Part shown: positions 13,849-38,376 of the stretch, piece after piece
How the letters are laid out: each line of letters starts with the position of its first letter
Numbering within the stretch: the stretch's first letter is position 1
Assembly: GCA_002269645.1 (NCBI GenBank)
Contig: NIVC01003988.1
Location: 1-64,000 of the forward strand
Source of the DNA: Macrostomum lignano
Taxonomy: Eukaryota
Reading direction: 5' to 3'
Length of the DNA stretch: 64,000 nucleotides
Notes under the pieces: model-generated
The model's database searches: none
The model's input: only the letters and a program-made list of their open reading frames with translations
What the model was told of the DNA's origin: nothing
Position numbers and translations under genes: made by a program

Positions 13849-13920
13849 GATACCTTAAGTCGTTATAAGTTACATAATATTTCTCATTGCTGATTCTCAA
13901 ATCAAAGCAGTCAGATCAAT

Positions 13921-16763
13921 ATGTCATCGGGCAATCAATTCTCAAATTCAATTGACGAGGTTGACGAACTTCAAGCCAACGAGGACCTCTCTAACGTTGG
14001 CAATCTGCCAAGGGCGCCTATATCGGCCCGTCAACAACAGAGAATCAATGATGAGCAATCTGACAGTATGAGAAATCTGCTTATAGTTGAGTATGCTGGC
14101 CGGCCTACGCTATTCATAATTCAGTCTATTGTAGCCCTGCTATGCGCCGCCTGCCTGCTCATACTGTCTATGGCCGTAGTCATCGTACTGCCTCTCATGT
14201 ACTCAGACCCAGACCAGAGTTATCCTATTAGTATTAATTTGCATAACTGCTGGGCTTATGGACTCTGGCTGCCCTTTCTAGTGGTTCCGTGGGCTGTGTT
14301 GATGCTCAAGGCTGCCAAGACTGGGTGGGCCAAATATGTGAGTTTTTTGCTGCCATTTAGTTTGCTTTTATTGTTGTTCTTAGACAGATTGTTGTAACTA
14401 GGATAAGATTTAGGTAGGTTTTGCTGTAATCAGGCCGAGATTTAGGTAGCTTTTGCTGTAATTAGAGTGAGATTTAGGTAGCTTTTGCTGTAATTAGAGT
14501 GAGATTTTGTTGGCTTTTGCTGTAATTATAGTGAGATTTAGGTAGCTTTTGCTGTAATTAGAGTGAGATTTAGGTAGCTTTTGCTGTAATTAGAGTGAGA
14601 TTTAGGTAGCTTTTGCTGTAATAAGGCCGAGATTTAGGTAGCTTTTGCTGTAATTAGAGTGAGATTTAGGTAGCTTTTGCTGTAATTAGAGTGAGATTTT
14701 GTTGGCTTTTGCTGTAATTATAGTGAGATTTAGGTAGCTTTTGCTGTAATTAGAGTGAGATTTAGGTAGCTTTTGCTGTAATTAGAGTGAGATTTAGGTA
14801 GCTTTTGCTGTAATCAGGCCGAGATTTAGGTAGCTTTTGCTGTAATTAGAGTGAGATTTAGGTAGCTTTTGCTGTAATTAGAGTGAGATTTAGGTAGCTT
14901 TTGCTGTAATTAGAGTGAGATTTAGGTAGCTTTTGCTGTAATTATAGTGAGATTTAGGTAGCTTTTGCTGTAATTAGAGTGAGATTTAGGTAGCTTTTGC
15001 TGTAATTAGAGTGAGATTTTGTTGGCTTTTGCTGTAATTAGAGTGAGATTTTGTTGGCTTTTGCTGTAATTAGAGTGAGATTTAGGTAGCTTTTGCTGTA
15101 ATTAGAGTGAGATTTAGGTAGCTTTTGCTGTAATTAGAGTGAGATTTAGGTAGCTTTTGCTGTAATCAGGCCGAGATTTAGGTAGCTTTTGCTGTAATTA
15201 GAGTGAGATTTAGGTAGCTTTTGCTGTAATCAGGCCGAGATTTAGGTAGCTTTTGCTGTAATTAGAGTGAGATTTAGGTAGCTTTTGCTGTAATTAGAGT
15301 GAGATTTAGGTAGCTTTTGCTGTAATTAGAGTGAGATTTAGGTAGCTTTTGCTGTAATTAGAGTGAGATTTAGGTAGCTTTTGCTGTAATTAGAGTGAGA
15401 TTTAGGTAGCTTTTGCTGTAATTAGAGTGAGATTTTGTTGGCTTTTGCTGTAATTAGAGTGAGATTTAGGTAGCTTTTGCTGTAATTAGAGTGAGATTTA
15501 GGTAGCTTTTGCTGTAATTAGAGTGAGATTTTGGTAGCTTTTGCTGTAATCAGGCCGAGATTTAGGTAGCTTTTGCTGTAATTAGAGTGAGATTTAGGTA
15601 GCTTTGTTGTAACTAGGATGAGATTTAGGTAGCTTTTGCTGTAATTAGGATGAGATTTAGGTAGCTTTGTTGTAACTAGGATGAGATTTAGGTAGCTTTG
15701 TTGTAACTAGGATGAGATTTAGGTAGGTTTTGCTGTAATCAGGCCGAGATTTAGGTAGCTTTTGCTGTAATTAGAGTGGGATTTAAGTCGGTTTTGTTGT
15801 AATCAAGCTGAGATTTAGGTAGGTTTGCTGTAATTAGGGTGAGATTTAGGTAGCTTCTGCTGTAATTAGGGTGAGATTTAGGTAGCTTCTGCTGTAATTA
15901 GGGTGAGATTTAGGTATCTTCTGCTGTAATTCTGATTACGGTGCTTTTGCTGTAATTAGGGTAAGATTTAGGTAGGTTTTGCTGTAGTTGGGTAGAGTTT
16001 TAGGTAGCTTAACTTTTTAAACAATTCATGACTAAATAAGCCAAAGATTCGGCAATCAAATTTCAGTTCATCACATTCTACTGTCTGTGCGTCCTCTCCA
16101 CTGTCTGCTGTACAGCTTTGGTGGTTTTGCGTTGTGTCTATTATGCTAGCAGCTGGTATCAGCCGCTTATTGACCAGGCAAACTTGGTGAGTTCTACTAA
16201 CAGACTCACTGACTCACTGACCCACTTACTGAATCAATGAGTTTGGTCTCTTTAGACTCACCGGCACTTCTGACCCACTGACTGACACACTGACACAGTG
16301 TGACTCACTATCATTGATTTACAGTGTGACTCACTATCATTGACCCACAGTGTGACTCACTATCATTGACCCACAGTGTGACTCACTATCATTGACCCAC
16401 AGTGTGACTCACTATCATTGACCCACAGTGTGACCCACTATCATTGACCCACAGTGTGACTCACTATCATTGACCCACAGTGTGTCTCACTATCATTGAC
16501 CCACAGTGTGACCCACTATCATTGACCGATGACTATCTCGCACACACCTCATCAACACTCAATCACCCATCCACCACAATTTGCAGACCTCAAGGCGACA
16601 ATTTGGCATCCAAATCGCTTGCGATGTCATCTGCTCAATCCTGCTATTAGAAGGCTCGACTCTGTTAATAATGTACTTTACCCTGTTCCTTCGCCTTTGT
16701 CGAGAACAGTCAACCAATAATGATGATAGTCTGAGCCGTGACAATCGAAATTGGTTTGTCTAA
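13921..16763 (+). CDS. Four-transmembrane protein, CD20/MS4A-like topology, 3 exons, 237 aa
   Basis: Exons 13921-14337, 16067-16186, 16587-16763 (714 nt, all phase 0, both donors GTGAGT). Four hydrophobic segments; WAYGLWLPF before TM2 resembles the MS4A aromatic/Gly motif. The family call is inference. Confidence 0.7.
14405..16010. repeat. 32-bp minisatellite in intron 1 of the 4-TM gene
   Basis: Unit GAGTGAGATTTAGGTAGCTTTTGCTGTAATTA, about 50 copies. Confidence 0.95.
16290..16530. repeat. 26-bp minisatellite in intron 2 of the 4-TM gene
   Basis: Unit TTGACCCACAGTGTGACTCACTATCA, about 9 copies. Confidence 0.93.
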
Positions 16764-18399
16764 ACAAATTCTTATATAACTGTTTGTAACAAAGCCTCTA
16801 TGATATTTTGCGTTGTTTATACATTGTCGTCCAAATTAATTTGTTTTGCAATAGAGCAATTTATGTATCCGATTTCTATTTTTTTTAAATTATATAGCGT
16901 TGCACTACTAACAGTAGATTGATTTTGTCTTGGCCGATTATTATAAATTGAAGATTTTTTCTGTTACAGAATTCTGAAGGCGTGTGTGTGTGTGTGTGTG
17001 TGTTTGTGCATTAGGCATTTCTTGGGACAAGCGTGTATAAACTGACCCGTGCTATTAGGACCAAAAATGTGTTGGGCCAGGCCCAATAAGTGCGTCCCGA
17101 CACTTCCAAAAATGAATTCTATTGAAATGAAAAAATATTCATTGGAACCGTCTTTCGATTCTCCTTTCAAAAATCAATGTCATTTTTTCATATTTTTAAT
17201 CAAACACGGGGAATCTAATGATTTGCAGTGTCCTAAGAAGTTTAAAAAATTATGCGAACTGATGGTCTGATCCAACAGAACAATTGGGTCTCAAATCGGT
17301 ATTCTCGTTTTATTACAATATTTCTTACAATATCAAGAAAGTCTACTACAAGTAACAGATAGAGGTTCTCCACAGGGCTGCCAATCGACACTTGAAAGGA
17401 TCCTGACATTTGGCATCGTGTTTACTATAAAATATGAAATAATTTAATAAGGATTTAGAATATTACAATCAAGCATACAAACCTTATAGATTTAGTATAT
17501 TTAGATTTTTGCATAGAAACAGCTAGCATCTAAATTCATTAGCTTCCAATTTCACTTATACACGAAACATGGCAAATTAAGGTTACATCCGCCTGTGCCC
17601 TCGGCCATTTTAACTGAAATTCTCGTTTTCAGTCAGCTGCATTAATCTATTTGTCATATGTGAATGGGTATTAACTGACTCAAGTTAGTGACTGGAGGCC
17701 ATTAACGTAAAGTGACACTTTGAGTGAGGTAGTTTTCCGGTGGAAATTCTCACAGTCTTATGAAGCGCTTTTAGAGCAAAGAAATAAAGGGCAAAGAAAA
17801 ACTTTGCATTTCCCGAGAAAACCGAGGACGAGTATTAGAGGGAAACGTTTAATCTCTAAGGCTTTAAATGACTTCCTTATTGGCCTGGGTTTGGGCAGCT
17901 ATACTATGTAGCAAAATTTTTCCTAGAATTATGATAATTATCGTCTGGTATACTGAAATGTACTGAGATACGAAGAAACTTAAGATGACTGCATGGACTG
18001 CTAGCACATGTTTGAGTGTCACTGTCACTGTAAAGTCGAAATCGATGACTAGTTGGCCCAAAACTAACTACTAGGCCTTCCTGGAAAACAATTCTGCTTA
18101 TCTTGGATCGTAAAGATAAACCCACGTACAGTGCAGAAGTGTTAGGACAAGCGTGTACAAGACCCAGGCAATCCCTTACCCAGGCCACGCGTACATTCCT
18201 ATCGCGGCGGGGGAAGCGGGGAGGAGAGGCGGGCGCAAGGGAGTCGGGATAAAGTTTACACTGAAGTTGAGGCCTACAAGAGGAAGAGCCAATTCTAACG
18301 GAAAGGTACATGTAGAAGTTCCCTTTGACAAAAGGCGTACTGGCGGTACTGCATATGTTCAAACGAATATAATTCATTTACGAGACCTGCACTACACAG

Positions 18400-19250
18400 A
18401 CAAAATGTGCCACGTCACAAGAGTTTCCATGCATGACCTGGCATGAAAAGACTTGGCTAGGAACCATTACACATATGTAAGTAGAATTTAAAATTCTTTT
18501 TAAAATTTTATGATTAAATAAAAACTTAACTGGAATTTACATATGTACTTTTCTAAAATTCCAGATACGTTGATATCGATAAGCTACCGTTTTCTTCTAT
18601 AACAAACAGATTTGCCTTCATTGTCAAGTAAGTCTTGTCTCGTACTCGTATATGTCGTATTTTTGTACGTTGAAAAAAATAATTAGCAGCCTAGTAATAC
18701 TCTGAGCTCAGTGAAATATAAGAGAGGCGGCACGATCACCTTATTTATCAATTAATTTACAACAGCACTACACAGCACTCATAAGTAGGCAAAATTTACA
18801 CTTCTAGGAAGAACAAATTTTACTAAAAGTTTCAATCAAAACATTTAGGAAAGAAATCTCGCATGACACATCGCCCACAGTACTAGAGACTTGGAGAAAT
18901 ACCATGTGAGTTTGCTGGGCAACTAATATAATATATTACTGTTATAATTCGATAGTCAAATTATTTTTCTACTCAAAGCAGTATTATTACATAACTAAAG
19001 AACAGTATAAAATGACAGCATTCTAGAACGAGAAACAAAGCTTACTGCAAAGGCAAACGCCGAAAGAAAAGCAGGGCAGAGTCAGCAACAAAAAAGAAGC
19101 TCATCTGATTGGGAAGATGGGCGGTCAGCAAAGAGATAGGATCTCAGAAAATTGCAACTCCCAGTAACTGAAACTTAATTGCAATATGTGTTTTGTTTTC
19201 TAGGGCATTATTAAAACAAGCAAGCCTGCCTGCAGTCAGCTAAGGGCAAA
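18400..19250 (+). other. Cluster of candidate small exons upstream of the tandem array (unknown gene, pseudogene or lncRNA)
   Basis: Consensus donors GTAAGT at 18477, 18628 and 19251, GTGAGT at 18906. Candidate exons 18400-18476, 18565-18627, 18808-18905, 19019-19163, 19204-19250. In-frame TAG at 19137; the frame cannot be joined end to end. Confidence 0.35.
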
Positions 19251-19468
19251 GTAAGTTGCTGCGGCACTATCGAGAAAGTGAAATTTGTACATACTCCATC
19301 TAACTGACACAAGCAGCACCGTTGGGACAAACTACGAGTATTTTAATTGTACAGTAAAATTTCATTGACAATGAAGCATTTATTAGAACAGCGACATTTA
19401 AATCTGTTTTCAAACAAATCAAACAGATTTCTCAATAAGTGATTTTTCTTTTGTGCGCTCACGCACAG

Positions 19469-20150
19469 GTTCGTCCGCATTCAAACTCGCCACTGCATCC
19501 GTCATTTATTTCACTTGCTGCTCACAAGCCGCAGCAGCAGCCGCTATCCGTGCAGGCAGTCAGTCTATTTGTGAATTTTCTGGTGGATCTGAAGAAAACC
19601 CGTCCGGCACAGGATTAAAGAGAAAGAGACGATCTGTTTTGGGTGAGTATTATCTGCTGTAGAAGTATTGTACACCAGAGTACTTGTGTTACTTGGTAGA
19701 GCACAATTCAAAAGCAATGCAACAATCTCAGTGGCATTGTTGGGACACAAGCTACAAACGCAATGAATAGTAAACACAGCCCAGCCTAGCTCAAGGCTAG
19801 TAATTTGTTGGGCATTTATTGGGACATTGCAGCCAGGCCTATTTTTTGAACAGCATTTGTTGGGTCGCACTTATTGGGACAATACTGATTCTAATCGCGA
19901 CTACTTCTGAGTTCTGACTTTTCAAAACAGACCCAGCATTAGTTGAACACGTTCTATTAAAGGGTTCCTTTATAGCCTATTAATGATTACTAAGGCAAGC
20001 CTATCTTAATTGATTTCTTTTCCTCGCAGATTCTGAAGTCAGCCACGCCAGCGACATGCCTAAGAGACAAGAATGCGCTTTAACGATCAGCAGCGAGCAT
20101 TCTGATCTCGCCGCTGCATCCGTCATTTGGTTCACTTGCTGCTCACAAGC

Positions 20151-20186
<36 letters not shown>

Positions 20187-20788
20187 GCTATCCGTGCAGG
20201 CAGTCAGTCTATTTGTGAATTTTCTGGTGGATCTGAAGAAAACCCGTCCGGCACAGGATTAAAGAGAAAGAGACGATCTGTTTTGGGTGAGTATTATCTG
20301 CTGTAGAAGTATTGTACACCAGAGTACTTGTGTTACTTGGTAGAGCACAATTCAAAAGCAATGCAACAATCTCAGTGGCATTGTTGGGACACAAGCTACA
20401 AACGCAATGAATAGTAAACACAGCCCAGCCTAGCTCAAGGCTAGTAATTTGTTGGGCATTTATTGGGACATTGCAGCCAGGCCTATTTTTTGAACAGCAT
20501 TTGTTGGGTCGCACTTATTGGGACAATACTGATTCTAATCGCGACTACTTCTGAGTTCTGACTTTTCAAAACAGACCCAGCATTAGTTGAACACGTTCTA
20601 TTAAAGGGTTCCTTTATAGCCTATTAATGATTACTAAAGGCAAGCCTATCTTAATTGATTTCTTTTCCTCGCAGATTCTGAAGTCAGCCACGCCAGCGAC
20701 ATGCCTAAGAGACAAGAATGCGCTTTAACGATCAGCAGCGAGCATTCTGATCTCGCCGCTGCATCCGTCATTTGGTTCACTTGCTGCT

Positions 20789-20855
<67 letters not shown>

Positions 20856-21457
20856 CTATCCGTGCAGGCAGTCAGTCTATTTGTGAATTTTCTGGTGGAT
20901 CTGAAGAAAACCCGTCCGGCACAGGATTAAAGAGAAAGAGACGATCTGTTTTGGGTGAGTATTATCTGCTGTAGAAGTATTGTACACCAGAGTACTTGTG
21001 TTACTTGGTAGAGCACAATTCAAAAGCAATGCAACAATCTCAGTGGCATTGTTGGGACACAAGCTACAAACGCAATGAATAGTAAACACAGCCCAGCCTA
21101 GCTCAAGGCTAGTAATTTGTTGGGCATTTATTGGGACATTGCAGCCAGGCCTATTTTTTGAACAGCATTTGTTGGGTCGCACTTATTGGGACAATACTGA
21201 TTCTAATCGCGACTACTTCTGAGTTCTGACTTTTCAAAACAGACCCAGCATTAGTTGAACACGTTCTATTAAAGGGTTCCTTTATAGCCTATTAATGATT
21301 ACTAAGCAAGCCTATCTTAATTGATTTCTTTTCCTCGCAGATTCTGAAGTCAGCCACGCCAGCGACATGCCTAAGAGACAAGAATGCGCTTTAACGATCA
21401 GCAGCGAGCATTCTGATCTCGCCGCTGCATCCGTCATTTGGTTCACTTGCTGCTCAC

Positions 21458-21498
<41 letters not shown>

Positions 21499-22108
21499 GC
21501 TATCCGTGCAGGCAGTCAGTCTATTTGTGAATTTTCTGGTGGATCTGAAGAAAACCCGTCCGGCACAGGATTAAAGAGAAAGAGACGATCTGTTTTGGGT
21601 GAGTATTATCTGCTGTAGAAGTATTGTACACCAGAGTACTTGTGTTACTTGGTAGAGCACAATTCAAAAGCAATGCAACAATCTCAGTGGCATTGTTGGG
21701 ACACAAGCTACAAACGCAATGAATAGTAAACACAGCCCAGCCTAGCTCAAGGCTAGTAATTTGTTGGGCATTTATTGGGACATTGCAGCCAGGCCTATTT
21801 TTTGAACAGCATTTGTTGGGTCGCACTTATTGGGACAATACTGATTCTAATCGCGACTACTTCTGAGTTCTGACTTTTCAAAACAGACCCAGCATTAGTT
21901 GAACACGTTCTATTAAAGGGTTCCTTTATAGCCTATTAATGATTACTAAAGGCAAGCCTATCTTAATTGATTTCTTTTCCTCGCAGATTCTGAAGTCAGC
22001 CACGCCAGCGACATGCCTAAGAGACAAGAATGCGCTTTAACGATCAGCAGCGAGCATTCTGATCTCGCCGCTGCATCCGTCATTTGGTTCACTTGCTGCT
22101 CACAAGCC

Positions 22109-22147
<39 letters not shown>

Positions 22148-22756
22148 GCTATCCGTGCAGGCAGTCAGTCTATTTGTGAATTTTCTGGTGGATCTGAAGA
22201 AAACCCGTCCGGCACAGGATTAAAGAGAAAGAGACGATCTGTTTTGGGTGAGTATTATCTGCTGTAGAAGTATTGTACACCAGAGTACTTGTGTTACTTG
22301 GTAGAGCACAATTCAAAAGCAATGCAACAATCTCAGTGGCATTGTTGGGACACAAGCTACAAACGCAATGAATAGTAAACACAGCCCAGCCTAGCTCAAG
22401 GCTAGTAATTTGTTGGGCATTTATTGGGACATTGCAGCCAGGCCTATTTTTTGAACAGCATTTGTTGGGTCGCACTTATTGGGACAATACTGATTCTAAT
22501 CGCGACTACTTCTGAGTTCTGACTTTTCAAAACAGACCCAGCATTAGTTGAACACGTTCTATTAAAGGGTTCCTTTATAGCCTATTAATGATTACTAAGG
22601 CAAGCCTATCTTAATTGATTTCTTTTCCTCGCAGATTCTGAAGTCAGCCACGCCAGCGACATGCCTAAGAGACAAGAATGCGCTTTAACGATCAGCAGCG
22701 AGCATTCTGATCTCGCCGCTGCATCCGTCATTTGGTTCACTTGCTGCTCACAAGCC

Positions 22757-22801
<45 letters not shown>

Positions 22802-23408
22802 GCTATCCGTGCAGGCAGTCAGTCTATTTGTGAATTTTCTGGTGGATCTGAAGAAAACCCGTCCGGCACAGGATTAAAGAGAAAGAGACGATCTGTTTTG
22901 GGTGAGTATTATCTGCTGTAGAAGTATTGTACACCAGAGTACTTGTGTTACTTGGTAGAGCACAATTCAAAAGCAATGCAACAATCTCAGTGGCATTGTT
23001 GGGACACAAGCTACAAACGCAATGAATAGTAAACACAGCCCAGCCTAGCTCAAGGCTAGTAATTTGTTGGGCATTTATTGGGACATTGCAGCCAGGCCTA
23101 TTTTTTGAACAGCATTTGTTGGGTCGCACTTATTGGGACAATACTGATTCTAATCGCGACTACTTCTGAGTTCTGACTTTTCAAAACAGACCCAGCATTA
23201 GTTGAACACGTTCTATTAAAGGGTTCCTTTATAGCCTATTAATGATTACTAAGGCAAGCCTATCTTAATTGATTTCTTTTCCTCGCAGATTCTGAAGTCA
23301 GCCACGCCAGCGACATGCCTAAGAGACAAGAATGCGCTTTAACGATCAGCAGCGAGCATTCTGATCTCGCCGCTGCATCCGTCATTTGGTTCACTTGCTG
23401 CTCACAAG

Positions 23409-23453
<45 letters not shown>

Positions 23454-24070
23454 GCTATCCGTGCAGGCAGTCAGTCTATTTGTGAATTTTCTGGTGGATC
23501 TGAAGAAAACCCGTCCGGCACAGGATTAAAGAGAAAGAGACGATCTGTTTTGGGTGAGTATTATCTGCTGTAGAAGTATTGTACACCAGAGTACTTGTGT
23601 TACTTGGTAGAGCACAATTCAAAAGCAATGCAACAATCTCAGTGGCATTGTTGGGACACAAGCTACAAACGCAATGAATAGTAAACACAGCCCAGCCTAG
23701 CTCAAGGCTAGTAATTTGTTGGGCATTTATTGGGACATTGCAGCCAGGCCTATTTTTTGAACAGCATTTGTTGGGTCGCACTTATTGGGACAATACTGAT
23801 TCTAATCGCGACTACTTCTGAGTTCTGACTTTTCAAAACAGACCCAGCATTAGTTGAACACGTTCTATTAAAGGGTTCCTTTATAGCCTATTAATGATTA
23901 CTAAAGCAAGCCTATCTTAATTGATTTCTTTTCCTCGCAGATTCTGAAGTCAGCCACGCCAGCGACATGCCTAAGAGACAAGAATGCGCTTTAACGATCA
24001 GCAGCGAGCATTCTGATCTCGCCGCTGCATCCGTCATTTGGTTCACTTGCTGCTCACAAGCCGCAGCAGC

Positions 24071-24103
<33 letters not shown>

Positions 24104-24706
24104 GCTATCCGTGCAGGCAGTCAGTCTATTTGTGAATTTTCTGGTGGATCTGAAGAAAACCCGTCCGGCACAGGATTAAAGAGAAAGAGACGATCTGTTT
24201 TGGGTGAGTATTATCTGCTGTAGAAGTATTGTACACCAGAGTACTTGTGTTACTTGGTAGAGCACAATTCAAAAGCAATGCAACAATCTCAGTGGCATTG
24301 TTGGGACACAAGCTACAAACGCAATGAATAGTAAACACAGCCCAGCCTAGCTCAAGGCTAGTAATTTGTTGGGCATTTATTGGGACATTGCAGCCAGGCC
24401 TATTTTTTGAACAGCATTTGTTGGGTCGCACTTATTGGGACAATACTGATTCTAATCGCGACTACTTCTGAGTTCTGACTTTTCAAAACAGACCCAGCAT
24501 TAGTTGAACACGTTCTATTAAAGGGTTCCTTTATAGCCTATTAATGATTACTAAAGCAAGCCTATCTTAATTGATTTCTTTTCCTCGCAGATTCTGAAGT
24601 CAGCCACGCCAGCGACATGCCTAAGAGACAAGAATGCGCTTTAACGATCAGCAGCGAGCATTCTGATCTCGCCGCTGCATCCGTCATTTGGTTCACTTGC
24701 TGCTCA

Positions 24707-24756
<50 letters not shown>

Positions 24757-25366
24757 GCTATCCGTGCAGGCAGTCAGTCTATTTGTGAATTTTCTGGTGG
24801 ATCTGAAGAAAACCCGTCCGGCACAGGATTAAAGAGAAAGAGACGATCTGTTTTGGGTGAGTATTATCTGCTGTAGAAGTATTGTACACCAGAGTACTTG
24901 TGTTACTTGGTAGAGCACAATTCAAAAGCAATGCAACAATCTCAGTGGCATTGTTGGGACACAAGCTACAAACGCAATGAATAGTAAACACAGCCCAGCC
25001 TAGCTCAAGGCTAGTAATTTGTTGGGCATTTATTGGGACATTGCAGCCAGGCCTATTTTTTGAACAGCATTTGTTGGGTCGCACTTATTGGGACAATACT
25101 GATTCTAATCGCGACTACTTCTGAGTTCTGACTTTTCAAAACAGACCCAGCATTAGTTGAACACGTTCTATTAAAGGGTTCCTTTATAGCCTATTAATGA
25201 TTACTAAAGCAAGCCTATCTTAATTGATTTCTTTTCCTCGCAGATTCTGAAGTCAGCCACGCCAGCGACATGCCTAAGAGACAAGAATGCGCTTTAACGA
25301 TCAGCAGCGAGCATTCTGATCTCGCCGCTGCATCCGTCATTTGGTTCACTTGCTGCTCAGCAAGCC

Positions 25367-25399
<33 letters not shown>

Positions 25400-26002
25400 G
25401 CTATCCGTGCAGGCAGTCAGTCTATTTGTGAATTTTCTGGTGGATCTGAAGAAAACCCGTCCGGCACAGGATTAAAGAGAAAGAGACGATCTGTTTTGGG
25501 TGAGTATTATCTGCTGTAGAAGTATTGTACACCAGAGTACTTGTGTTACTTGGTAGAGCACAATTCAAAAGCAATGCAACAATCTCAGTGGCATTGTTGG
25601 GACACAAGCTACAAACGCAATGAATAGTAAACACAGCCCAGCCTAGCTCAAGGCTAGTAATTTGTTGGGCATTTATTGGGACATTGCAGCCAGGCCTATT
25701 TTTTGAACAGCATTTGTTGGGTCGCACTTATTGGGACAATACTGATTCTAATCGCGACTACTTCTGAGTTCTGACTTTTCAAAACAGACCCAGCATTAGT
25801 TGAACACGTTCTATTAAAGGGTTCCTTTATAGCCTATTAATGATTACTAAAGCAAGCCTATCTTAATTGATTTCTTTTCCTCGCAGATTCTGAAGTCAGC
25901 ACGCCAGCGACATGCCTAAGAGACAAGAATGCGCTTTAACGATCAGCAGCGAGCATTCTGATCTCGCCGCTGCATCCGTCATTTGGTTCACTTGCTGCTC
26001 AC

Positions 26003-26049
<47 letters not shown>

Positions 26050-26657
26050 CTATCCGTGCAGGCAGTCAGTCTATTTGTGAATTTTCTGGTGGATCTGAAG
26101 AAAACCCGTCCGGCACAGGATTAAAGAGAAAGAGACGATCTGTTTTGGGTGAGTATTATCTGCTGTAGAAGTATTGTACACCAGAGTACTTGTGTTACTT
26201 GGTAGAGCACAATTCAAAAGCAATGCAACAATCTCAGTGGCATTGTTGGGACACAAGCTACAAACGCAATGAATAGTAAACACAGCCCAGCCTAGCTCAA
26301 GGCTAGTAATTTGTTGGGCATTTATTGGGACATTGCAGCCAGGCCTATTTTTTGAACAGCATTTGTTGGGTCGCACTTATTGGGACAATACTGATTCTAA
26401 TCGCGACTACTTCTGAGTTCTGACTTTTCAAAACAGACCCAGCATTAGTTGAACACGTTCTATTAAAGGGTTCCTTTATAGCCTATTAATGATTACTAAA
26501 GCAAGCCTATCTTAATTGATTTCTTTTCCTCGCAGATTCTGAAGTCAGCCACGCCAGCGACATGCCTAAGAGACAAGAATGCGCTTTAACGATCAGCAGC
26601 GAGCATTCTGATCTCGCCGCTGCATCCGTCATTTGGTTCACTTGCTGCTCACAACAG

Positions 26658-26699
<42 letters not shown>

Positions 26700-27301
26700 G
26701 CTATCCGTGCAGGCAGTCAGTCTATTTGTGAATTTTCTGGTGGATCTGAAGAAAACCCGTCCGGCACAGGATTAAAGAGAAAGAGACGATCTGTTTTGGG
26801 TGAGTATTATCTGCTGTAGAAGTATTGTACACCAGAGTACTTGTGTTACTTGGTAGAGCACAATTCAAAAGCAATGCAACAATCTCAGTGGCATTGTTGG
26901 GACACAAGCTACAAACGCAATGAATAGTAAACACAGCCCAGCCTAGCTCAAGGCTAGTAATTTGTTGGGCATTTATTGGGACATTGCAGCCAGGCCTATT
27001 TTTTGAACAGCATTTGTTGGGTCGCACTTATTGGGACAATACTGATTCTAATCGCGACTACTTCTGAGTTCTGACTTTTCAAAACAGACCCAGCATTAGT
27101 TGAACACGTTCTATTAAAGGGTTCCTTTATAGCCTATTAATGATTACTAAAGCAAGCCTATCTTAATTGATTTCTTTTCCTCGCAGATTCTGAAGTCAGC
27201 CACGCCAGCGACATGCCTAAGAGACAAGAATGCGCTTTAACGATCAGCAGCGAGCATTCTGATCTCGCCGCTGCATCCGTCATTTGGTTCACTTGCTGCT
27301 C

Positions 27302-27342
<41 letters not shown>

Positions 27343-27943
27343 GCTATCCGTGCAGGCAGTCAGTCTATTTGTGAATTTTCTGGTGGATCTGAAGAAAACC
27401 CGTCCGGCACAGGATTAAAGAGAAAGAGACGATCTGTTTTGGGTGAGTATTATCTGCTGTAGAAGTATTGTACACCAGAGTACTTGTGTTACTTGGTAGA
27501 GCACAATTCAAAAGCAATGCAACAATCTCAGTGGCATTGTTGGGACACAAGCTACAAACGCAATGAATAGTAAACACAGCCCAGCCTAGCTCAAGGCTAG
27601 TAATTTGTTGGGCATTTATTGGGACATTGCAGCCAGGCCTATTTTTTGAACAGCATTTGTTGGGTCGCACTTATTGGGACAATACTGATTCTAATCGCGA
27701 CTACTTCTGAGTTCTGACTTTTCAAAACAGACCCAGCATTAGTTGAACACGTTCTATTAAAGGGTTCCTTTATAGCCTATTAATGATTACTAAAGCAAGC
27801 CTATCTTAATTGATTTCTTTTCCTCGCAGATTCTGAAGTCAGCCACGCCAGCGACATGCCTAAGAGACAAGAATGCGCTTTAACGATCAGCAGCGAGCAT
27901 TCTGATCTCGCCGCTGCATCCGTCATTTGGTTCACTTGCTGCT

Positions 27944-27987
<44 letters not shown>

Positions 27988-28587
27988 GCTATCCGTGCAG
28001 GCAGTCAGTCTATTTGTGAATTTTCTGGTGGATCTGAAGAAAACCCGTCCGGCACAGGATTAAAGAGAAAGAGACGATCTGTTTTGGGTGAGTATTATCT
28101 GCTGTAGAAGTATTGTACACCAGAGTACTTGTGTTACTTGGTAGAGCACAATTCAAAAGCAATGCAACAATCTCAGTGGCATTGTTGGACACAAGCTACA
28201 AACGCAATGAATAGTAAACACAGCCCAGCCTAGCTCAAGGCTAGTAATTTGTTGGGCATTTATTGGGACATTGCAGCCAGGCCTATTTTTTGAACAGCAT
28301 TTGTTGGGTCGCACTTATTGGGACAATACTGATTCTAATCGCGACTACTTCTGAGTTCTGACTTTTCAAAACAGACCCAGCATTAGTTGAACACGTTCTA
28401 TTAAAGGGTTCCTTTATAGCCTATTAATGATTACTAAAGCAAGCCTATCTTAATTGATTTCTTTTCCTCGCAGATTCTGAAGTCAGCCACGCCAGCGACA
28501 TGCCTAAGAGACAAGAATGCGCTTTAACGATCAGCAGCGAGCATTCTGATCTCGCCGCTGCATCCGTCATTTGGTTCACTTGCTGCT

Positions 28588-28629
<42 letters not shown>

Positions 28630-29236
28630 GCTATCCGTGCAGGCAGTCAGTCTATTTGTGAATTTTCTGGTGGATCTGAAGAAAACCCGTCCGGCACAGG
28701 ATTAAAGAGAAAGAGACGATCTGTTTTGGGTGAGTATTATCTGCTGTAGAAGTATTGTACACCAGAGTACTTGTGTTACTTGGTAGAGCACAATTCAAAA
28801 GCAATGCAACAATCTCAGTGGCATTGTTGGGACACAAGCTACAAACGCAATGAATAGTAAACACAGCCCAGCCTAGCTCAAGGCTAGTAATTTGTTGGGC
28901 ATTTATTGGGACATTGCAGCCAGGCCTATTTTTTGAACAGCATTTGTTGGGTCGCACTTATTGGGACAATACTGATTCTAATCGCGACTACTTCTGAGTT
29001 CTGACTTTTCAAAACAGACCCAGCATTAGTTGAACACGTTCTATTAAAGGGTTCCTTTATAGCCTATTAATGATTACTAAAGCAAGCCTATCTTAATTGA
29101 TTTCTTTTCCTCGCAGATTCTGAAGTCAGCACGCCAGCGACATGCCTAAGAGACAAGAATGCGCTTTAACGATCAGCAGCGAGCATTCTGATCTCGCCGC
29201 TGCATCCGTCATTTGGTTCACTTGCTGCTCAGCAGC

Positions 29237-29269
<33 letters not shown>

Positions 29270-29872
29270 GCTATCCGTGCAGGCAGTCAGTCTATTTGTG
29301 AATTTTCTGGTGGATCTGAAGAAAACCCGTCCGGCACAGGATTAAAGAGAAAGAGACGATCTGTTTTGGGTGAGTATTATCTGCTGTAGAAGTATTGTAC
29401 ACCAGAGTACTTGTGTTACTTGGTAGAGCACAATTCAAAAGCAATGCAACAATCTCAGTGGCATTGTTGGGACACAAGCTACAAACGCAATGAATAGTAA
29501 ACACAGCCCAGCCTAGCTCAAGGCTAGTAATTTGTTGGGCATTTATTGGGACATTGCAGCCAGGCCTATTTTTTGAACAGCATTTGTTGGGTCGCACTTA
29601 TTGGGACAATACTGATTCTAATCGCGACTACTTCTGAGTTCTGACTTTTCAAAACAGACCCAGCATTAGTTGAACACGTTCTATTAAAGGGTTCCTTTAT
29701 AGCCTATTAATGATTACTAAAGCAAGCCTATCTTAATTGATTTCTTTTCCTCGCAGATTCTGAAGTCAGCACGCCAGCGACATGCCTAAGAGACAAGAAT
29801 GCGCTTTAACGATCAGCAGCGAGCATTCTGATCTCGCCGCTGCATCCGTCATTTGGTTCACTTGCTGCTCAC

Positions 29873-29910
<38 letters not shown>

Positions 29911-30517
29911 GCTATCCGTGCAGGCAGTCAGTCTATTTGTGAATTTTCTGGTGGATCTGAAGAAAACCCGTCCGGCACAGGATTAAAGAGAAAGAGACGA
30001 TCTGTTTTGGGTGAGTATTATCTGCTGTAGAAGTATTGTACACCAGAGTACTTGTGTTACTGGTAGAGCACAATTCAAAAGCAATGCAACAATCTCAGTG
30101 GCATTGTTGGGACACAAGCTACAAACGCATGAATAGTAAACACAGCCCAGCCTAGCTCAAGGCTAGTAATTTGTTGGGCATTTATTGGGACATTGCAGCC
30201 AGGCCTATTTTTTGAACAGCATTTGTTGGGTCGCACTTATTGGGACAATACTGATTCTAATCGCGACTACTTCTGAGTTCTGACTTTTCAAAACAGACCC
30301 AGCATTAGTTGAACACGTTCTATTAAAGGGTTCCTTTATAGCCTATTAATGATTACTAAAGCAAGCCTATCTTAATTGATTTCTTTTCCTCGCAGATTCT
30401 GAAGTCAGCCACGCCAGCGACATGCCTAAGAGACAAGAATGCGCTTTAACGATCAGCAGCGAGCATTCTGATCTCGCCGCTGCATCCGTCATTTGGTTCA
30501 CTTGCTGCTCACAAGCC

Positions 30518-30553
<36 letters not shown>

Positions 30554-31152
30554 GCTATCCGTGCAGGCAGTCAGTCTATTTGTGAATTTTCTGGTGGATC
30601 TGAAGAAAACCCGTCCGGCACAGGATTAAAGAGAAAGAGACGATCTGTTTTGGGTGAGTATTATCTGCTGTAGAAGTATTGTACACCAGAGTACTTGTGT
30701 TACTGGGTAGAGCACAATTCAAAAGCAATGCAACAATCTCAGTGGCATTGTTGGGACACAAGCTACAAACGCAATGAATAGTAAACACAGCCCAGCCTAG
30801 CTCAAGGCTAGTAATTTGTTGGGCATTTATTGGGACATTGCAGCCAGGCCTATTTTTTGAACAGCATTTGTTGGGTCGCACTTATTGGGACAATACTGAT
30901 TCTAATCGCGACTACTTCTGAGTTCTGACTTTTCAAAACAGACCCAGCATTAGTTGAACACGTTCTATTAAAGGGTTCCTTTATAGCCTATTAATGATTA
31001 CTAAAGCAAGCCTATCTTAATTGATTTCTTTTCCTCGCAGATTCTGAAGTCAGCACGCCAGCGACATGCCTAAGAGACAAGAATGCGCTTTAACGATCAG
31101 CAGCGAGCATTCTGATCTCGCCGCTGCATCCGTCATTTGTTCACTTGCTGCT

Positions 31153-31193
<41 letters not shown>

Positions 31194-31215
31194 GCTATCC
31201 GTGCAGCAGTCAGTT
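19469..31215 (+). repeat. Tandem array of a ~650-bp exon+intron unit (1 divergent + 18 near-identical copies, last truncated by the gap), each with a variable CAG tract
   Basis: Unit starts (first base after the acceptor AG): 19469 (variant), 20030, 20675, 21341, 21987, 22635, 23289, 23941, 24591, 25244, 25887, 26536, 27187, 27830, 28474, 29117, 29757, 30396, 31041. The 18 near-identical copies start with TTGATTTCTTTTCCTCGCAG|ATTCTG; every complete unit ends with TTTTGG|GTGAGT. Confidence 0.97.
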
Positions 31216-31792
31216 NNNNNNNNNNNNNNNNNNNNNNNNNNNNNNNNNNNNNNNNNNNNNNNNNNNNNNNNNNNNNNNNNNNNNNNNNNNNNNNNNNNNN
31301 NNNNNNNNNNNNNNNNNNNNNNNNNNNNNNNNNNNNNNNNNNNNNNNNNNNNNNNNNNNNNNNNNNNNNNNNNNNNNNNNNNNNNNNNNNNNNNNNNNNN
31401 NNNNNNNNNNNNNNNNNNNNNNNNNNNNNNNNNNNNNNNNNNNNNNNNNNNNNNNNNNNNNNNNNNNNNNNNNNNNNNNNNNNNNNNNNNNNNNNNNNNN
31501 NNNNNNNNNNNNNNNNNNNNNNNNNNNNNNNNNNNNNNNNNNNNNNNNNNNNNNNNNNNNNNNNNNNNNNNNNNNNNNNNNNNNNNNNNNNNNNNNNNNN
31601 NNNNNNNNNNNNNNNNNNNNNNNNNNNNNNNNNNNNNNNNNNNNNNNNNNNNNNNNNNNNNNNNNNNNNNNNNNNNNNNNNNNNNNNNNNNNNNNNNNNN
31701 NNNNNNNNNNNNNNNNNNNNNNNNNNNNNNNNNNNNNNNNNNNNNNNNNNNNNNNNNNNNNNNNNNNNNNNNNNNNNNNNNNNNNNNNNNNN
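31216..31792. other. Assembly gap (577 N)
   Basis: Run of N at the end of the array; true copy number is unknown. Confidence 0.99.
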
Positions 31793-32974: not shown

Positions 32975-33390
32975 TCTAGCCTGCATTTCTGTCACACTCT
33001 CGCCTGCATTTCTGTCACACTCTCGCCTGCATTTCTGTCACACTCTCGCCTGCATCTCTGTCACACTCTCGCCTGCATTTCTGTCACACTCTCGCCTGCA
33101 TCTCTGTCACACTCTCGCCTGCATTTCTGTCACACTCTCGCATCACTCTCGCCTGCATTTCTGTCACACTCTCGCCTGCATTTCTGTCACACTCTCGCCT
33201 GCATTTCTGTCACACTCTCGCCTGCATTTCTGTCACACTCTCGTCACACTGCCTGCATTTCTGTCACACTCTCGCCTGCATTTCTGTCACACTCTCGTCA
33301 TTTCTGTCACACTCTCGCCTGCATGTCACACTCTCGCCTCTGTCAGCATTTCTGTCACACTCTCGCATTTCTGTCGCCTGCGTTCTGTCA
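32975..33390. repeat. 23-bp minisatellite (CTCGCCTGCATTTCTGTCACACT)
   Basis: About 16 copies, degenerating toward the 3' end. Confidence 0.93.
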
Positions 33391-34074
33391 CACATTTCAA
33401 TTTTAGACTTGCTCACAACTCTTCCATTATTGCAATCGTCTGTCACTACTGTCAGTTTCAAGTAAGCTGTCTTAAAAAAGTGAAGTTTTAAAAGATTTGT
33501 TTAGCAAGCATCGCAGCTGCAGCAGAGTTGCAGGCACGGCGAGAGCCCAGTAATACAAGCTATTTTAGTTTAATCACGTGTTTTAGTGCGATTACCAGAG
33601 AGTATCGAGGTGAAGCCGAACTGGTGCATTTTGCTGAAGAATTCCAGCCTTTCAGCTGCACGGCAATAGAATGCAGTAGTAGCGCTGGTCACTTTGATAC
33701 TATAGCCTAGTAACAGAAAACCATCGGAATGCTTAATGCACTCACGAATAGATAGTTGCATTTTGGGGGCACATGACCTCGTAGGGTTCTCTAAGGCTCT
33801 CGCATACTCTCACTGACTGTGAAAGTTGCATGTAGGCAAAGACACAAAATTCTTGAGGTCTAAAATATCCAATAATACGCGTTCAAACTACTGAACTCAG
33901 CGGCCACACTGCTTCAGTTGCAAAGTGCCAAACAGATTCTTAAGTCTATGGTACGAATCGCGTGCATTAAATTAGCCAGACACGTGCAAGGTGGCTGCTG
34001 ACACAGAGATTGTGCACTTCGCAAGTGCATTTTGTTCAGCAAAAACACGCGGAAGTCTCGTCAAAGCATCAGCC

Positions 34075-37000
34075 ATGCGTCCTGCATACGGCAGCAGCCG
34101 AGGCTGGGCAGCAGCGGATGACTCGGCTTCTTCGGCGACGGGCGGCCGCCAGCGAGTCCGGGTCACCGCTGCCAGTCGGCGGGCCGACAGCCCCGCGCCC
34201 GCCGCCGTCCCTGGCATCATCTTCGGCCGGCTGAACCTGGCCAAGGCTTTCCGGCCGCAGGCGGCCCAGCTGCAGCAGCGGCCGGGGACAGTGTCGGGGA
34301 CAGTTGCAGGTCGACGGCCGAGCGCTGCACCGAGCGGCGACATCAGCGGCGGCTGCCCATTCAAAGAGCGGGCGGCAGCGACCCACAGCCGACCGACTCC
34401 GATGCCTGAAACGCCGCAACCTTCTTCAGCCCCACCGCCGCCTCGGCCGCAGGGCCCGCCAGCGACTGCCTGCGTTGTGCAGCTGGAGACGCCGCTGACT
34501 TCCGTCAGCCCGCCCAGTTCGGCGCAGAAGCGGCGCCCGCCCGCAGCCACGCGCAGCTGCGCCGCTGGCCGCGCCTTCCCGTTTGCAGGGCAGCCGCCCC
34601 GCCGGAGATTCGCTGCTGCCCGGGCGGAGACGCTGCCGACGGTGCCACCGGCGCCACCCTGGGCAGCCGAGAGAGCGCTGGCAGCCGACCGTTCCGCTTC
34701 TTCCGCAGCTTCCTCAAGCGGGTCGGCCGCCGCTCCCGGTCTCGGGGCCGCTGCGCCGGCGACAGCAAGCGAGGCCGCAGCCGCAGCCTGCCGCCAACCC
34801 CGGCGTCGTCGAGGCCGATGCTGCGGTCGCAAACTCCGACACCGCCGCCGACACCGCCGATGCCGACGCCGGCGACCTCTGCAATGTCGATGGATGGAGA
34901 CTCCCCGTCTGCTGAGTCCTCCGCCGGTGAAGCCGAGGAGGAGGAGGCGGCGGAGCAGCGGCAACCCCGGCCAGGTCAGCAGAGGCAGTCGGAGGTCGTG
35001 GTGGCGACTTTCAGCGGCTGGTTCAGGCAGGCCACGCCATCGGAGCCGAACCGGCTGGCGTTCTTGGCCAGCCTGCTTGACTCTCAGGACGCCTCTTCGG
35101 CGACCTCGTCAGTCTCCGCCGCCGCGCCACCCCAGCTGCCATCTCCGCCGCCGCAGCACCCGCGCCAAACCCCACCCATCTCGGCCAATCCAAGGCGGAC
35201 CGCAGCTGAGCAGCCGAACCAAAAAAGACTCCCTGCTGCCCCGCCGATGCCGGCGCCGCAGCCGCCGCCTCCTCGGCCTGCGGGTTCAAAGCCAAAGCGC
35301 TGCCCGCCGAAGCAGCAGCCACAGCAGCAGCGGCAGAAGCGCTCGCAGCGGCAACCAGTCGCTCCCAGGACGCAGCCACCGCCCAGCCGAGCAACGCGCC
35401 TCGCAACCGAGCGAAGGCCGCAGACGCTGGCGGTGGGGGCGGCCGCTCCGCAGCGTCGGTGGGTTCTGCCGCCGGAACCTGCGGCCCCCAAGCCGGCCCG
35501 CGGCCCGCAGCAGAAGCCGGTCTCCAGAGCGGAGGCGAGGCGCCGAAAGCAGCTGGCCGAGCTGCTGCAGCTCGAGGAGGCGGTCAGGAACATGATCGTT
35601 GATGGCCCGGACGATCAGCTGGCGTCCGAGTCTCAGCTACTGTTCGATGACGACAGTGATTCCCTGACGACGCTTGATGACAACCTGCGGCCAGACTGCA
35701 AAGACCTGCAATCAGACGAGGGAGATGACGACGGCTCCATTGTGTCGTTTCCGGCTTTCACTGAGCTGCCTGTGCGGCCACCTCCGCCGCTGAAGACTGT
35801 CGCAGCTGCGGTCTCACCGCTGGCAGCGCGGCTGCCCCAAATAGCAGCTCCACCTCCGCCTCCGCCTCCGCCCCCTCCTCCACCCCCGCTTCCGTATCTT
35901 CCCCCGCCTCCGCCCCCATCTCCGCCCCCGCCTCCGCCCCTATCTTCGCCCCCGCCTCCGCCTCCTCCTCCGCCCCCTCCTCTGCCTCCGCCTACGCATC
36001 AGCCTCTCCAGAATTCCCCAGGCATGACGTCACTTTCCGTAGCAGTAGCGGGCAGCGACTCAAACAGCTTCAGCAGCGACTCATCCTGCGACACTGAAAG
36101 CAGCAGAAGCTGCAAAAGCAGCAAAAGTAGCAGAAGCAACAGAACCAATAGAAGCAGCAGCAGCAGCGACAAAACCAGCTGCGCAAGTCACAGAGAAGAC
36201 GAAGCGCCCAGCACTCCAACCGAGCGACCCGAAGCCATCCGCTTGACCGTCTCGTGGAGCATGGCAGTCGAGATGTCTTCATCTGATGATGAGTCAGGCA
36301 CCACCGGCGCAAATACAGAGGAGCTCTCAGAAGCCCAGCCTCAGCCGCCAGCTCCGCCGTCCACAGCGCCGGCAGCGGCGCCAGAAGCTCCTGTGCCAGA
36401 AGTCCAGCAGCTGCCACGCGAACCCGCGGCCGCAGCTGCAGCGGAGCTCCTGGCCCGGCTGCGCAGCCTGAAGGCGCCGGCCGGCATGGAGGCGATGCTG
36501 AGGGCCGAGCTGGACGCACTGGCTCGCTGCGTCGGCTGCCGCTTGTCGCCGTCGAGATCATCAACGCCTGACGATGCTTCAACGCTGAGCAGCGACAGAG
36601 GCGACTCCGACAGCAAGCAGCTGGAGGACGCGTGGAGCGCCGGCGAACTGTCCGACGAGCCCTGCTGCCCGTGGCACCTGCGCCAGATGATGGAGCTGTA
36701 CCGCCACACTGAGGACAGGCGGCGAGGCATTCAGGCCTATCACCAGAGCCTGCGACAGCTGGTCGACCTTCGGCCATCGCTGGAAAGCATACCGGAGCTG
36801 CCAAATGAAGAGGAGGCTGCGGAGGCGGCGACTGTCTGGGAAGAGTCAGGAGACGAGCAGCGCAGCAGCGACGCAACAGACGCCGACAGCGGGCCCGGGA
36901 CTGCATCGTCATCGACTCGGCAGCTCCTAACAAGCCGCCTCGGCGAGGAGATTCGCCAGCTGCAGCAGCGACTGGCGCAGGCGTCCGTGACTTCGCAATC

Positions 37001-37142
37001 GGGATTTTCTTCCTCAGCTTCGTCGGCCTCGTCCGGTTCGTCCCGGCGAAGACTAGACCTTCTTGACAGCGGCGGCAGCAGCTTCGGTCTGACTTCGGAC
37101 GATGCGACCAGCAGCGGCAGCGATCGAACCACGGACTTTTGA
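34075..37142 (+). CDS. Large Pro/Ser/Ala-rich disordered orphan protein with poly-Pro tract and C-terminal helical segment; 5' part frame-broken
   Basis: The frame of ORF 34818-37142 is open back to 34410. An ATG-initiated frame starts at 34075 in a different frame, so an indel or intron is needed near 34400-34620. No family recognised. Confidence 0.5.
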
Positions 37143-37254
37143 GCGCAGTCTGTTTTCATTGAAGACATTCCCTGGATGTAGAGCTTGACTTAATAAAGGT
37201 CCGCCAACCCTATTTCTTTACCCTTGACTGGGTTCCCCCGGTTTTTCTATCCCA

Positions 37255-37799: not shown

Positions 37800-38200
<401 letters not shown>

Positions 38201-38376
38201 TAGACAAGGTAGGCTTCTCTTACACTACTTGCGTATATACTACTAATGAGAGCTTTTTCCATAGAGCAGTCTATTCTCGGCAACACCAAACCGGGATGCA
38301 AACAGCATGCTGAGATCGAAGCGAAGTCTTCATGAACTTTTATTTACAATAAATTATCAATTGACGCGGAGGAGGC

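Follow-up and report, generated by a model that had tools for sequence, protein, structure and literature searches.

The window analysed here is a stretch of 64,000 nucleotides from Macrostomum lignano (GenBank assembly GCA_002269645.1, contig NIVC01003988.1, positions 1 to 64,000, read on the forward strand). It contains an array of 19 tandem exon-plus-intron units, each 639-668 bp long (~645 bp) and arranged head to tail, which is preceded by a left arm, followed by an assembly gap (Table 1) and accompanied by related copies elsewhere in the assembly, referred to below as sister loci (L001, L002 and so on). An initial annotation, made from the sequence alone, had described the array as at least 19 phase-symmetric exon cassettes that could encode a repeat protein.

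Architecture of the exon-plus-intron array

Splice sites were located by exact-string anchors and (GCA)n tracts with Tandem Repeats Finder. The anchors identified 18 acceptors (TTCCTCGCAG/ATTCTGAAG, with the slash marking the splice site) and 18 donors (TTTTGG/GTGAGT) at a spacing of 639-668 bp from 19637 to 31031, in line with the signals initially reported. All 18 full units, which amount to ~18.3 monomers of high identity, contained a polypyrimidine-CAG acceptor of the form TTCCTCGCAG/AT, a GTGAGT donor and one (GCA)n tract. The introns were 387-388 nt in length, close to the ~388 nt given originally, but their supposed AT-richness is merely mild (40% GC, compared with 52% in the exons). 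The junction codon G/AT (Asp) places the intron in phase 1 on both sides of the exon, as had been proposed. The cassette junction has the overall form TCTGTTTTGG^(A/C)TTCTGAAGT; the D/H type, present in the window and in L001, reads TCTGTTTTGG^ATTCTGAAGT, and the A/N type TCTGTTTTGG^CTTCTGAAGT. An Rfam scan of positions 16900-22300 returned (GCA)n noise only.

The donor and acceptor fit the M. lignano splice consensus motifs GT[G/A]AG and CAG (PMC8629364). A single GTRAGT and a single strong polypyrimidine-YAG occur per unit; the two lie on the plus strand and enclose the sole long open stretch there. When the unit was shuffled, a strong acceptor and a GTRAGT donor around an open exon of 150-400 nt with a length divisible by three were obtained in 2 of 3000 cases. 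The length of the open reading frame (ORF) was rejected as evidence of coding, and is weak evidence by itself, because the minus strand of the same unit has an equally long stop-free stretch (101 codons, compared with 97 on the plus strand). The antisense stretch (window 21599-21986, and likewise in each of the remaining units) extends over the intron and the 3' portion of the exon and is GTG-initiated (MRPNKCCSKNRPGC..) in L001; it is probably due to chance and can serve as a control for ORF length.

All 19 exons were translated. Only the poly-Ala frame was found to be open, while the poly-Gln frame stops at ..AQD and the poly-Ser frame at ..YL, as noted previously. Seven of the 19 window copies are divisible by three and open in the poly-Ala frame, namely the same seven, with the same positions and lengths, that had been listed as intact (Table 1); the remaining 12 are frameshifted in this assembly. 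Each of these frameshifts is located at the edge of a (GCA)n tract or consists of a CC->C change in CAGCCACGCC. In contig-interior sister arrays 25 of 26 cassettes were intact; arrays at contig ends were worse. Because the shifts lie at low-complexity positions and the contig-interior sister arrays are clean, the comparison suggests that most window frameshifts are long-read consensus errors of the assembly. Splicing in silico yielded a single uninterrupted frame of 726 codons for L003, extending from exon 1 to the terminal stop, and produced one frameshift each for L001 and L002 and many for the window.

Table 1. Features of the window (positions refer to the 64,000-nt stretch; exon lengths in nt)
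Feature	Position	Strand	Remarks
Sugar/MFS transporter	1922-4707	-	
OST-alpha/TMEM184-type transporter	6144-9898	+	
Left arm of element	16982-19468	+	Starts with (GT)n and GTTTGTGCATTAGGCATTTCTTGGGAC; ends with first acceptor ..TTTTCTTTTGTGCGCTCACGCACAG/
Exon 1, truncated cassette, 174 nt, in frame	19469-19642	+	SSAFKLATASVIYFTCCSQAAAAAAIRAGSQSICEFSGGSEENPSGTGLKRKRRSVL; own acceptor, no ATG
Intron 1, first of 18 near-identical introns	19643-20029	+	GTGAGT...polypyrimidine-CAG
Cassette exon 2, 257 nt, frameshifted	20030-20286	+	
Cassette exon 3, 280 nt, frameshifted	20675-20954	+	Longest tract, (GCA)22
Cassette exon 4, 258 nt, intact	21341-21598	+	(D)SEVSHASDMPKRQECALTISSEHSDLAAASVIWFTCCSQ(A)14IRAGSQSICEFSGGSEENPSGTGLKRKRRSVL
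Cassette exon 5, 261 nt, intact	21987-22247	+	
Cassette exon 6, 267 nt, intact	22635-22901	+	
Cassette exon 7, 265 nt, frameshifted	23289-23553	+	Tract edge
Cassette exon 8, 263 nt, frameshifted	23941-24203	+	Tract edge
Cassette exon 9, 266 nt, frameshifted	24591-24856	+	Tract edge
Cassette exon 10, 256 nt, frameshifted	25244-25499	+	Tract edge
Cassette exon 11, 262 nt, frameshifted	25887-26148	+	CC->C in CAGCCACGCC and tract edge
Cassette exon 12, 264 nt, intact	26536-26799	+	
Cassette exon 13, 256 nt, frameshifted	27187-27442	+	Tract edge
Cassette exon 14, 258 nt, intact	27830-28087	+	
Cassette exon 15, 256 nt, frameshifted	28474-28729	+	Tract edge
Cassette exon 16, 253 nt, frameshifted	29117-29369	+	CC->C and tract edge
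Cassette exon 17, 254 nt, frameshifted	29757-30010	+	CC->C
Cassette exon 18, 258 nt, intact	30396-30653	+	
Exon 19, terminal-exon type, interrupted by gap	31041-31215	+	..GTGCAG-CAGTCAGTT
Assembly gap, 577 N	31216-31792	.	Probably hides terminal-exon end, poly(A) signal and ~0.95-kb right arm
Fibrinogen C domain protein	50781-51227	-	
Calpain with MIT domain	58512-62288	-	
TRAPP subunit	63297-63857	-	

The first and last exons differ from the cassettes between them. Exon 1, which starts with GTTCGTCCGC at 19469 behind the acceptor CACGCACAG/GTTCGTCC, is a truncated cassette without an ATG and is in frame in seven of eight loci. The array had been taken to start at this base; the repeat actually begins within the exon, at ~19478-19485. 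The terminal exon departs from the cassette sequence after the Ala tract and reaches a stop via ..IRAGSQLIDEFSG(R/G)AGYFLSF, or, in a variant with a 1-nt deletion, after ..ICAAVS, followed by AATAAA 80-120 nt later (6/6 loci). As the last window copy (..GTGCAGCAGTCAGTT; ..GTGCAG-CAGTCAGTT) bears both diagnostic terminal-exon characters of the sister loci, the array is taken to be complete at 19 exons, rather than consisting of at least 19, and the gap presumably conceals its stop codon and poly(A) signal together with the right arm. With 577 N, the gap falls short of the 1 kb or more expected for the rest of the terminal exon and the right arm, and the DNA past it (to 33000) is unrelated to the right arm of every sister locus; either its size may be underestimated or the scaffold join may be wrong.

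No left-arm exon that would supply an ATG in phase 1 for the poly-Ala frame was found. Within the spliced RNA, the earliest AUG is that of MPKRQ in the first full cassette; it is in frame with the ORF and has a G at -3. In M. lignano, the spliced leader terminates with an ATG (PMC8629364); joined at 19469, it would open the poly-Gln frame (VRPHSNS..AQD, then a stop). Three UniProt models begin exactly at this base.

A heptamer, TTGGGAC, occurs in three exact copies per intron in most units, together with two near-copies (TTGGGC, TTGGGT). In L002:4459-12402, which corresponds to window 17021-31215, it was found 28 times, compared with 1.9 expected. Elsewhere in the element, five copies are located in a 38-bp minisatellite of the right arm and one ~25 nt from the left end, and one copy in inverted orientation lies ~60 nt from the right end. 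The heptamer could be a protein-binding motif or a subterminal repeat motif of the element.

Dispersed copies of the element

Sister loci were retrieved via the protein models P0008, P0002, P0031 and P0004, which led to 13 loci on ten contigs of the same assembly. Every one of them holds an array of 7-19 units. The arrays are 4.6-12 kb in length, located in gene introns and overlain by spliced gene models; a classical satellite, i.e. a long, non-coding, heterochromatic array that is untranscribed or unspliced, was rejected for this reason. The left arm (2.5 kb, window 16982-19484) is 95-99% identical in every locus, and the right arm (~0.95 kb), which is lacking in the window, shows 98-99% identity between those sister loci whose sequence included it. 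For the left arm, the comparison covered the left flank of the array in L001, L002, L003, L007, L009, L010 and L013. Outside both arms, the DNA is unrelated and homology ends at the identical base across loci, giving the element sharp ends, (GT)n-GTTTGTGCATTAGGCATTTCTTGGGAC on the left and ..GGCCAATAAGTGCCTCGTGCACGTTTGTG-(TG)n on the right, which are common to six left and five right contexts. In L003, the element is inserted in sense orientation within an intron of a myosin II heavy-chain gene, and in L001 it lies antisense in a TIR-domain gene model, downstream of the first coding exon. Identical arms with sharp ends are thus set amid unrelated flanks, and the array forms the core of a dispersed element, known from six or more unrelated contexts, and is not a single private gene. 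The repeat protein of ~1600 aa or more estimated in the initial annotation is an upper bound that applies to this copy only, given that the sister copies comprise 8-20 exons and that the array here ends at the gap.

Both ends of the element adjoin (GT)n/(TG)n, with only the short subterminal TTGGGAC motifs in inverted orientation, and no Helitron hallmarks were found. The arms contain no long ORF with a family match, and a Pfam search with the left-arm ORF gave nothing meaningful. Between loci, array consensus sequences diverge at 0-3 of 387 intron positions (0-0.8%) and at 0-3 of 214 exon positions (0-1.4%).

Gene models, sequence variation and genomic surroundings

When a two-module protein was used as a query, 30 of 30 matches were M. 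lignano proteins. The predicted junction, KRKRRSVL/DSEVSHASD or KRKRRSVL/ASEVSNASD, is carried by the NCBI models PAA82201.1 (P0002), PAA69956.1 and PAA86953.1, by P0004, P0008 and P0031-P0042, and by the BOX15_Mlig029855 g10-g39 series, and the models with this junction map to sister copies of the element. P0002 uses two canonical introns and finishes in the distinct terminal exon (..GSQLIDEFSGRAGYFLSF); P0047 is an intron-retaining model (..SVLGEY). The published M. lignano annotation is a genome-guided transcriptome built from RNA-seq data (StringTie and TACO) and BLAT-mapped de novo transcripts, with additional use of trans-splicing and poly(A) evidence (PMC5730564). From their shared Mlig0xxxxx.gN naming, the BOX15 gene models appear to derive from this RNA-seq-built Mlig_3_7 annotation, and splicing of donor to next acceptor thus appears to be already in the public record, second-hand, through gene models of sister loci. 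Literature and supplements on Mlig029855, Mlig026960, Mlig003618, Mlig020682 and Mlig033615 were searched without finding a mention, and a search for M. lignano satellites returned nothing specific.

Other models were interpreted differently. Many WormBase-derived UniProt models enter the poly-Gln frame via junctions such as LKKT/HSEVSH or IRAG/NSEVSH and are regarded as prediction artefacts with invented junctions. Long-span models (1.8, 2.4 and 7.6 kb) were not accepted as cases of cassette skipping, since the same 130-aa product is set on many near-identical units and its mapping is ambiguous. Mutually exclusive exons of the Dscam type were also rejected, as the cassettes are near-identical rather than diverged and the models hold consecutive cassettes. 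The UniProt entries P0015 and P0024-P0030 are cassette-only fragments named Dymeclin or UCH-, Rho-GAP-, BAF250_C- or DRIM-domain proteins, which suggests further copies of the element inside such host genes, modelled as isoforms.

For counts of variation, 122 units from ten loci were aligned, with the exon columns excluding the (GCA)n tract. Of the 387 intron columns, 21 were variable, as were 13 of the 214 exon columns. The exon changes comprise 12 nonsynonymous and 3 synonymous substitutions; with a neutral expectation of 22% synonymous changes, this is the neutral ratio. A nonsense change (TGG->TAG) has spread through 11 units of L013. The low divergence of array consensuses was discarded as evidence of selection, since mutations confined to single units drop out of a consensus and introns show no less conservation than exons. 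The GC content at third codon positions is 0.44 in the cassette (0.38 including the tract), compared with 0.53-0.87 in eight neighbouring coding ORFs, and the Ala run consists entirely of GCA, the rarest Ala codon in these ORFs.

The statement that the module belongs to no recognised family was borne out. In Pfam, a two-module window query gave FTR_C as the best match, with 24 bits below the cut-off of 25, and the sister models P0001 and P0005 gave marginal matches only; Bd3614_N nominally passes on P0001 (25.9 bits), with no single stretch passing alone. These weak matches are taken to be due to the poly-Ala tract. An exhaustive HMMER search against 1.84 billion representatives revealed no relative outside M. 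lignano; P0057, P0059 and P0060 were dismissed as unrelated repeat proteins. The AlphaFold2 model of P0003 has a predicted local distance difference test score of 42. KRKRR and PKR are present in every module, the hydrophobic stretch reaches a borderline Kyte-Doolittle maximum of 1.6, and candidate tryptic peptides of the module are AGSQSICEFSGGSEENPSGTGLK and QECALTISSEHSDLAAASVIWFTCCSQAAA...

A second, diverged M. lignano family (family 2; P0058 and P0061, UniProt A0A1I8FV09 and A0A1I8HX90) emerged from the HMMER search and shows 56% amino-acid identity to the proteins described so far (family 1). Conservation between the two peaks at KRKRRSVL/AS.VSNASDMPKR, SEHSD and SQSI. The hydrophobic, Cys-rich centre of family 1 is not kept in family 2 (Kyte-Doolittle maximum 0.57), whose centre is non-hydrophobic (LLAAQEQQQTLL) at the position of the family 1 poly-Ala tract. 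Two caveats apply to this comparison: family 2 turned up only because it was predicted as protein, and the best-conserved stretch straddles the splice junction. A search for family 2 DNA, from which the ratio of nonsynonymous to synonymous substitution rates could be calculated, yielded no record and no NCBI model.

The genes that surround the element in the window are ordinary (Table 1). An ORF of 774 codons on the plus strand (34818-37142; ~70% GC, Pro/Ser/Ala-rich, no Pfam match) could form a low-complexity exon in some large gene. Minisatellites of 20-51-bp units crowd the introns and intergenic DNA (1004-16527, 32975-42396 and 54196-64000), for example at 12405-13847 (35 bp, 41 copies) and 14406-16010 (32 bp, 50 copies), and long (AGAC)n/(GTCT)n and (TCTA)n tracts are found at 7990-8454, 37798-38194, 57590-57919 and 59110-59737. 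An RVT_1 reverse-transcriptase fragment at 42404-43387 (E = 1.6e-4) is a dispersed retroelement relic; a 627-bp piece with 96% identity lies in opposite orientation at L002:18553-19179, near another copy of the element.

Interpretation and significance

We read the array, with a probability of about 0.6, as the core of an M. lignano-specific, gene-like dispersed element with a spliced modular ORF that seems unconstrained at present. The element would consist, in this order, of (GT)n, the 2.5-kb left arm, an acceptor-only first exon, a variable number of identical cassettes, a terminal exon with a stop and an AATAAA ~100 nt further on, the 0.95-kb right arm and (TG)n, each cassette comprising an exon of 85 codons, divisible by three and in phase 1 on both sides, and a 388-nt intron. 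On the indirect evidence of the gene models, the array would be transcribed and the spliceosome would join each GTGAGT donor to the next polypyrimidine-CAG acceptor, so that the mature RNA would be a string of cassettes with one modular ORF. Unequal exchange between the 645-bp units probably alters the number of cassettes (7-19) and slippage the length of the (GCA)n tract; both would spare the frame, because the cassette is divisible by three and phase-symmetric. Concerted evolution would keep exon and intron equally homogeneous, and the identical ends show dispersal of the element to six or more unrelated sites. The exon-cassette interpretation of the initial annotation is very probably correct in large part at the RNA level, second-hand as the evidence is, and the predicted junction was recovered in sister-locus gene models; a protein-coding function is not shown, the variation being neutral-like and one array carrying a spread nonsense codon. 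To judge by its sequence, the ORF evolves as if unconstrained at present, with a useful protein unproven, and whether a functional protein is made at all is doubtful. In our view this ORF is more likely a young proto-gene, or a transcript carried by the element, than an established gene for a protein.

Several observations weigh against this reading. No terminal inverted repeats, long terminal repeats, clear target-site duplication or transposase were found, and a comparison of arm against arm gave 9-12-mers only; identical ends in unrelated contexts are the sole support for calling the element mobile. Neither a promoter nor a start of transcription or trans-splice site could be assigned to it. 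The only tie between the BOX15 tags and the RNA-seq-based annotation is the shared naming, and the second-hand splicing evidence could stem from one or a few copies, for instance the one inside the myosin gene, which is highly expressed. Members of family 1 diverge by less than 1%, and the selection tests are low-powered for this reason. Finally, family 2 retains the frame, the junction and the module length and has a similar terminal exon, which hints at some maintenance of the ORF.

One rival reading is a genuine protein-coding family. Translation of the spliced mRNA would start at MPKRQ.. and yield a secreted protein or polyprotein of 600-1600 aa built of modules, each of which proprotein convertases would cut at KRKRR/PKR, the products being ~85-aa repeats or the conserved peptide SVL(A/D)SEVS(N/H)ASDMP and the array length setting dose or size. 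Such a family would fit an ORF that is open and divisible by three in nearly all well-assembled cassettes and complete in L003, a first AUG in frame with G at -3, the 'Secreted protein' label that several MPKRQ-initiated models bear in UniProt, together with the hydrophobic stretch (Kyte-Doolittle 1.6), and the fact that the RKRR/KR sites and the 14 residues between them are best conserved across the two families, both of which keep the frame. We nevertheless consider it rather unlikely. The ratio of nonsynonymous to synonymous changes is neutral, exon variation equals intron variation, and a nonsense codon has been homogenised across L013; neither the hydrophobic segment nor the cysteines are shared by family 2 (Kyte-Doolittle maximum 0.57), codon usage is atypical, and there is neither a confident fold nor a relative outside the species. 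The conserved stretch, moreover, straddles the junction, and splicing signals could account for it.

At the other extreme, the array could be a non-coding satellite within a repeat element, whose splice sites are relics of the exon and intron that gave rise to the unit and whose gene models, lacking any product of their own, reflect read-through from host genes (exonisation, gene trap) or ambiguous mapping. The location of copies within introns of other genes, a first exon with an acceptor for which no promoter or ATG was found, the partial nature of all NCBI models, the UniProt fragments named for host-type domains (UCH, Rho-GAP, BAF250_C, DRIM, Dymeclin), the neutral variation and the many WormBase-derived models with invented poly-Gln-frame junctions all agree with this. 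It is quite improbable, however, given that ORF, length divisible by three, terminal stop and poly(A) signal are retained in almost every copy and that P0002 reaches the terminal exon through two canonical introns; the antisense copy in L001 is not explicable by host read-through either, though mapping there may be ambiguous. Hardly credible is a collapsed or expanded repeat created by the assembly, with meaningless copy number and frames. The 12 frameshifted window copies, all shifted at low-complexity sites, and an array that adjoins an N gap beyond which the sequence is unlike the right arm would point in this direction, but the same array and arms occur on at least nine other contigs of GCA_002269645.1, several of them contig-interior with clean frames. 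As regards the existence of the array, this reading is largely refuted, and only the exact copy number and the indels in the window are still doubtful.

The closest kinds of known systems are homogenised exon-intron variable-number tandem repeat genes and tandem repeats inside mobile elements. The kringle IV type 2 repeat of human LPA, which is confined to a single locus, has a 5.5-kb unit with two exons, and the folded kringle domain that they encode is under selection. Like the array studied here, it is a tandem, in-frame and homogenised repeat of whole exons with introns in which copy number alters protein length and the frame is kept; here, in contrast, the unit is 645 bp with one exon, has no recognisable domain and no detectable constraint, and the array is dispersed. 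The spider Flag silk gene, reportedly described by Hayashi and Lewis in 2000, is said to consist of iterated exon-intron modules that undergo concerted evolution, with introns at least as homogeneous as exons. The same relation between intron and exon homogeneity holds here, but Flag is one structural gene whose expression is high and whose product is known, whereas the present array is carried by a repeat element and its protein is unproven. Modules that end in polybasic sites (KRKRR, PKR), with the stretch between sites best conserved, also recall multi-copy neuropeptide or prohormone precursors; unlike these, the present modules are 85 aa long with one exon each, and lack a conserved N-terminal signal peptide and an amidation glycine. 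Satellite-like repeats inside mobile elements have been described as Helentron-borne satellite DNA in oysters (PMC7492417) and as retrotransposon-derived arrays in plants (PMC7004042). They share units of a few hundred bp between conserved arms, dispersal in gene-rich DNA and a copy number that varies per insertion, but are non-coding and unspliced, whereas the monomer here is a splice-competent, open, phase-symmetric exon plus intron. No description of this combination of an exon-cassette array with a dispersed element was found in the literature.

A bolder version of our reading, which we consider speculative and improbable, would be a mobile, non-autonomous exon-array cassette. It would bring along a splice acceptor and a row of open, phase-symmetric exons that expands by itself, as well as a stop and a poly(A) signal. 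Sense copies in introns would then act as gene traps or graft 85-aa segments onto host proteins, and the element on its own would encode a fast-evolving, convertase-processed secreted polyprotein whose length is set by satellite dynamics.

The importance of the finding is limited in that the gene models are already public and no protein-level function is indicated. For M. lignano itself, the element accounts for at least 39 'hypothetical protein' models (BOX15_Mlig029855 series), ~50 UniProt fragments and several contig breaks, and it carries a warning for annotation, since models predicted ab initio in the poly-Gln frame are regarded as artefactual. If confirmed, it would represent a case in which satellite-type dynamics (unequal exchange, concerted evolution and slippage) act on a splice-competent, frame-neutral exon and in which such an array is copied around the genome as a block, linking the origin of satellites, the birth of repeat proteins and orphan genes, and exonisation by repeat elements.

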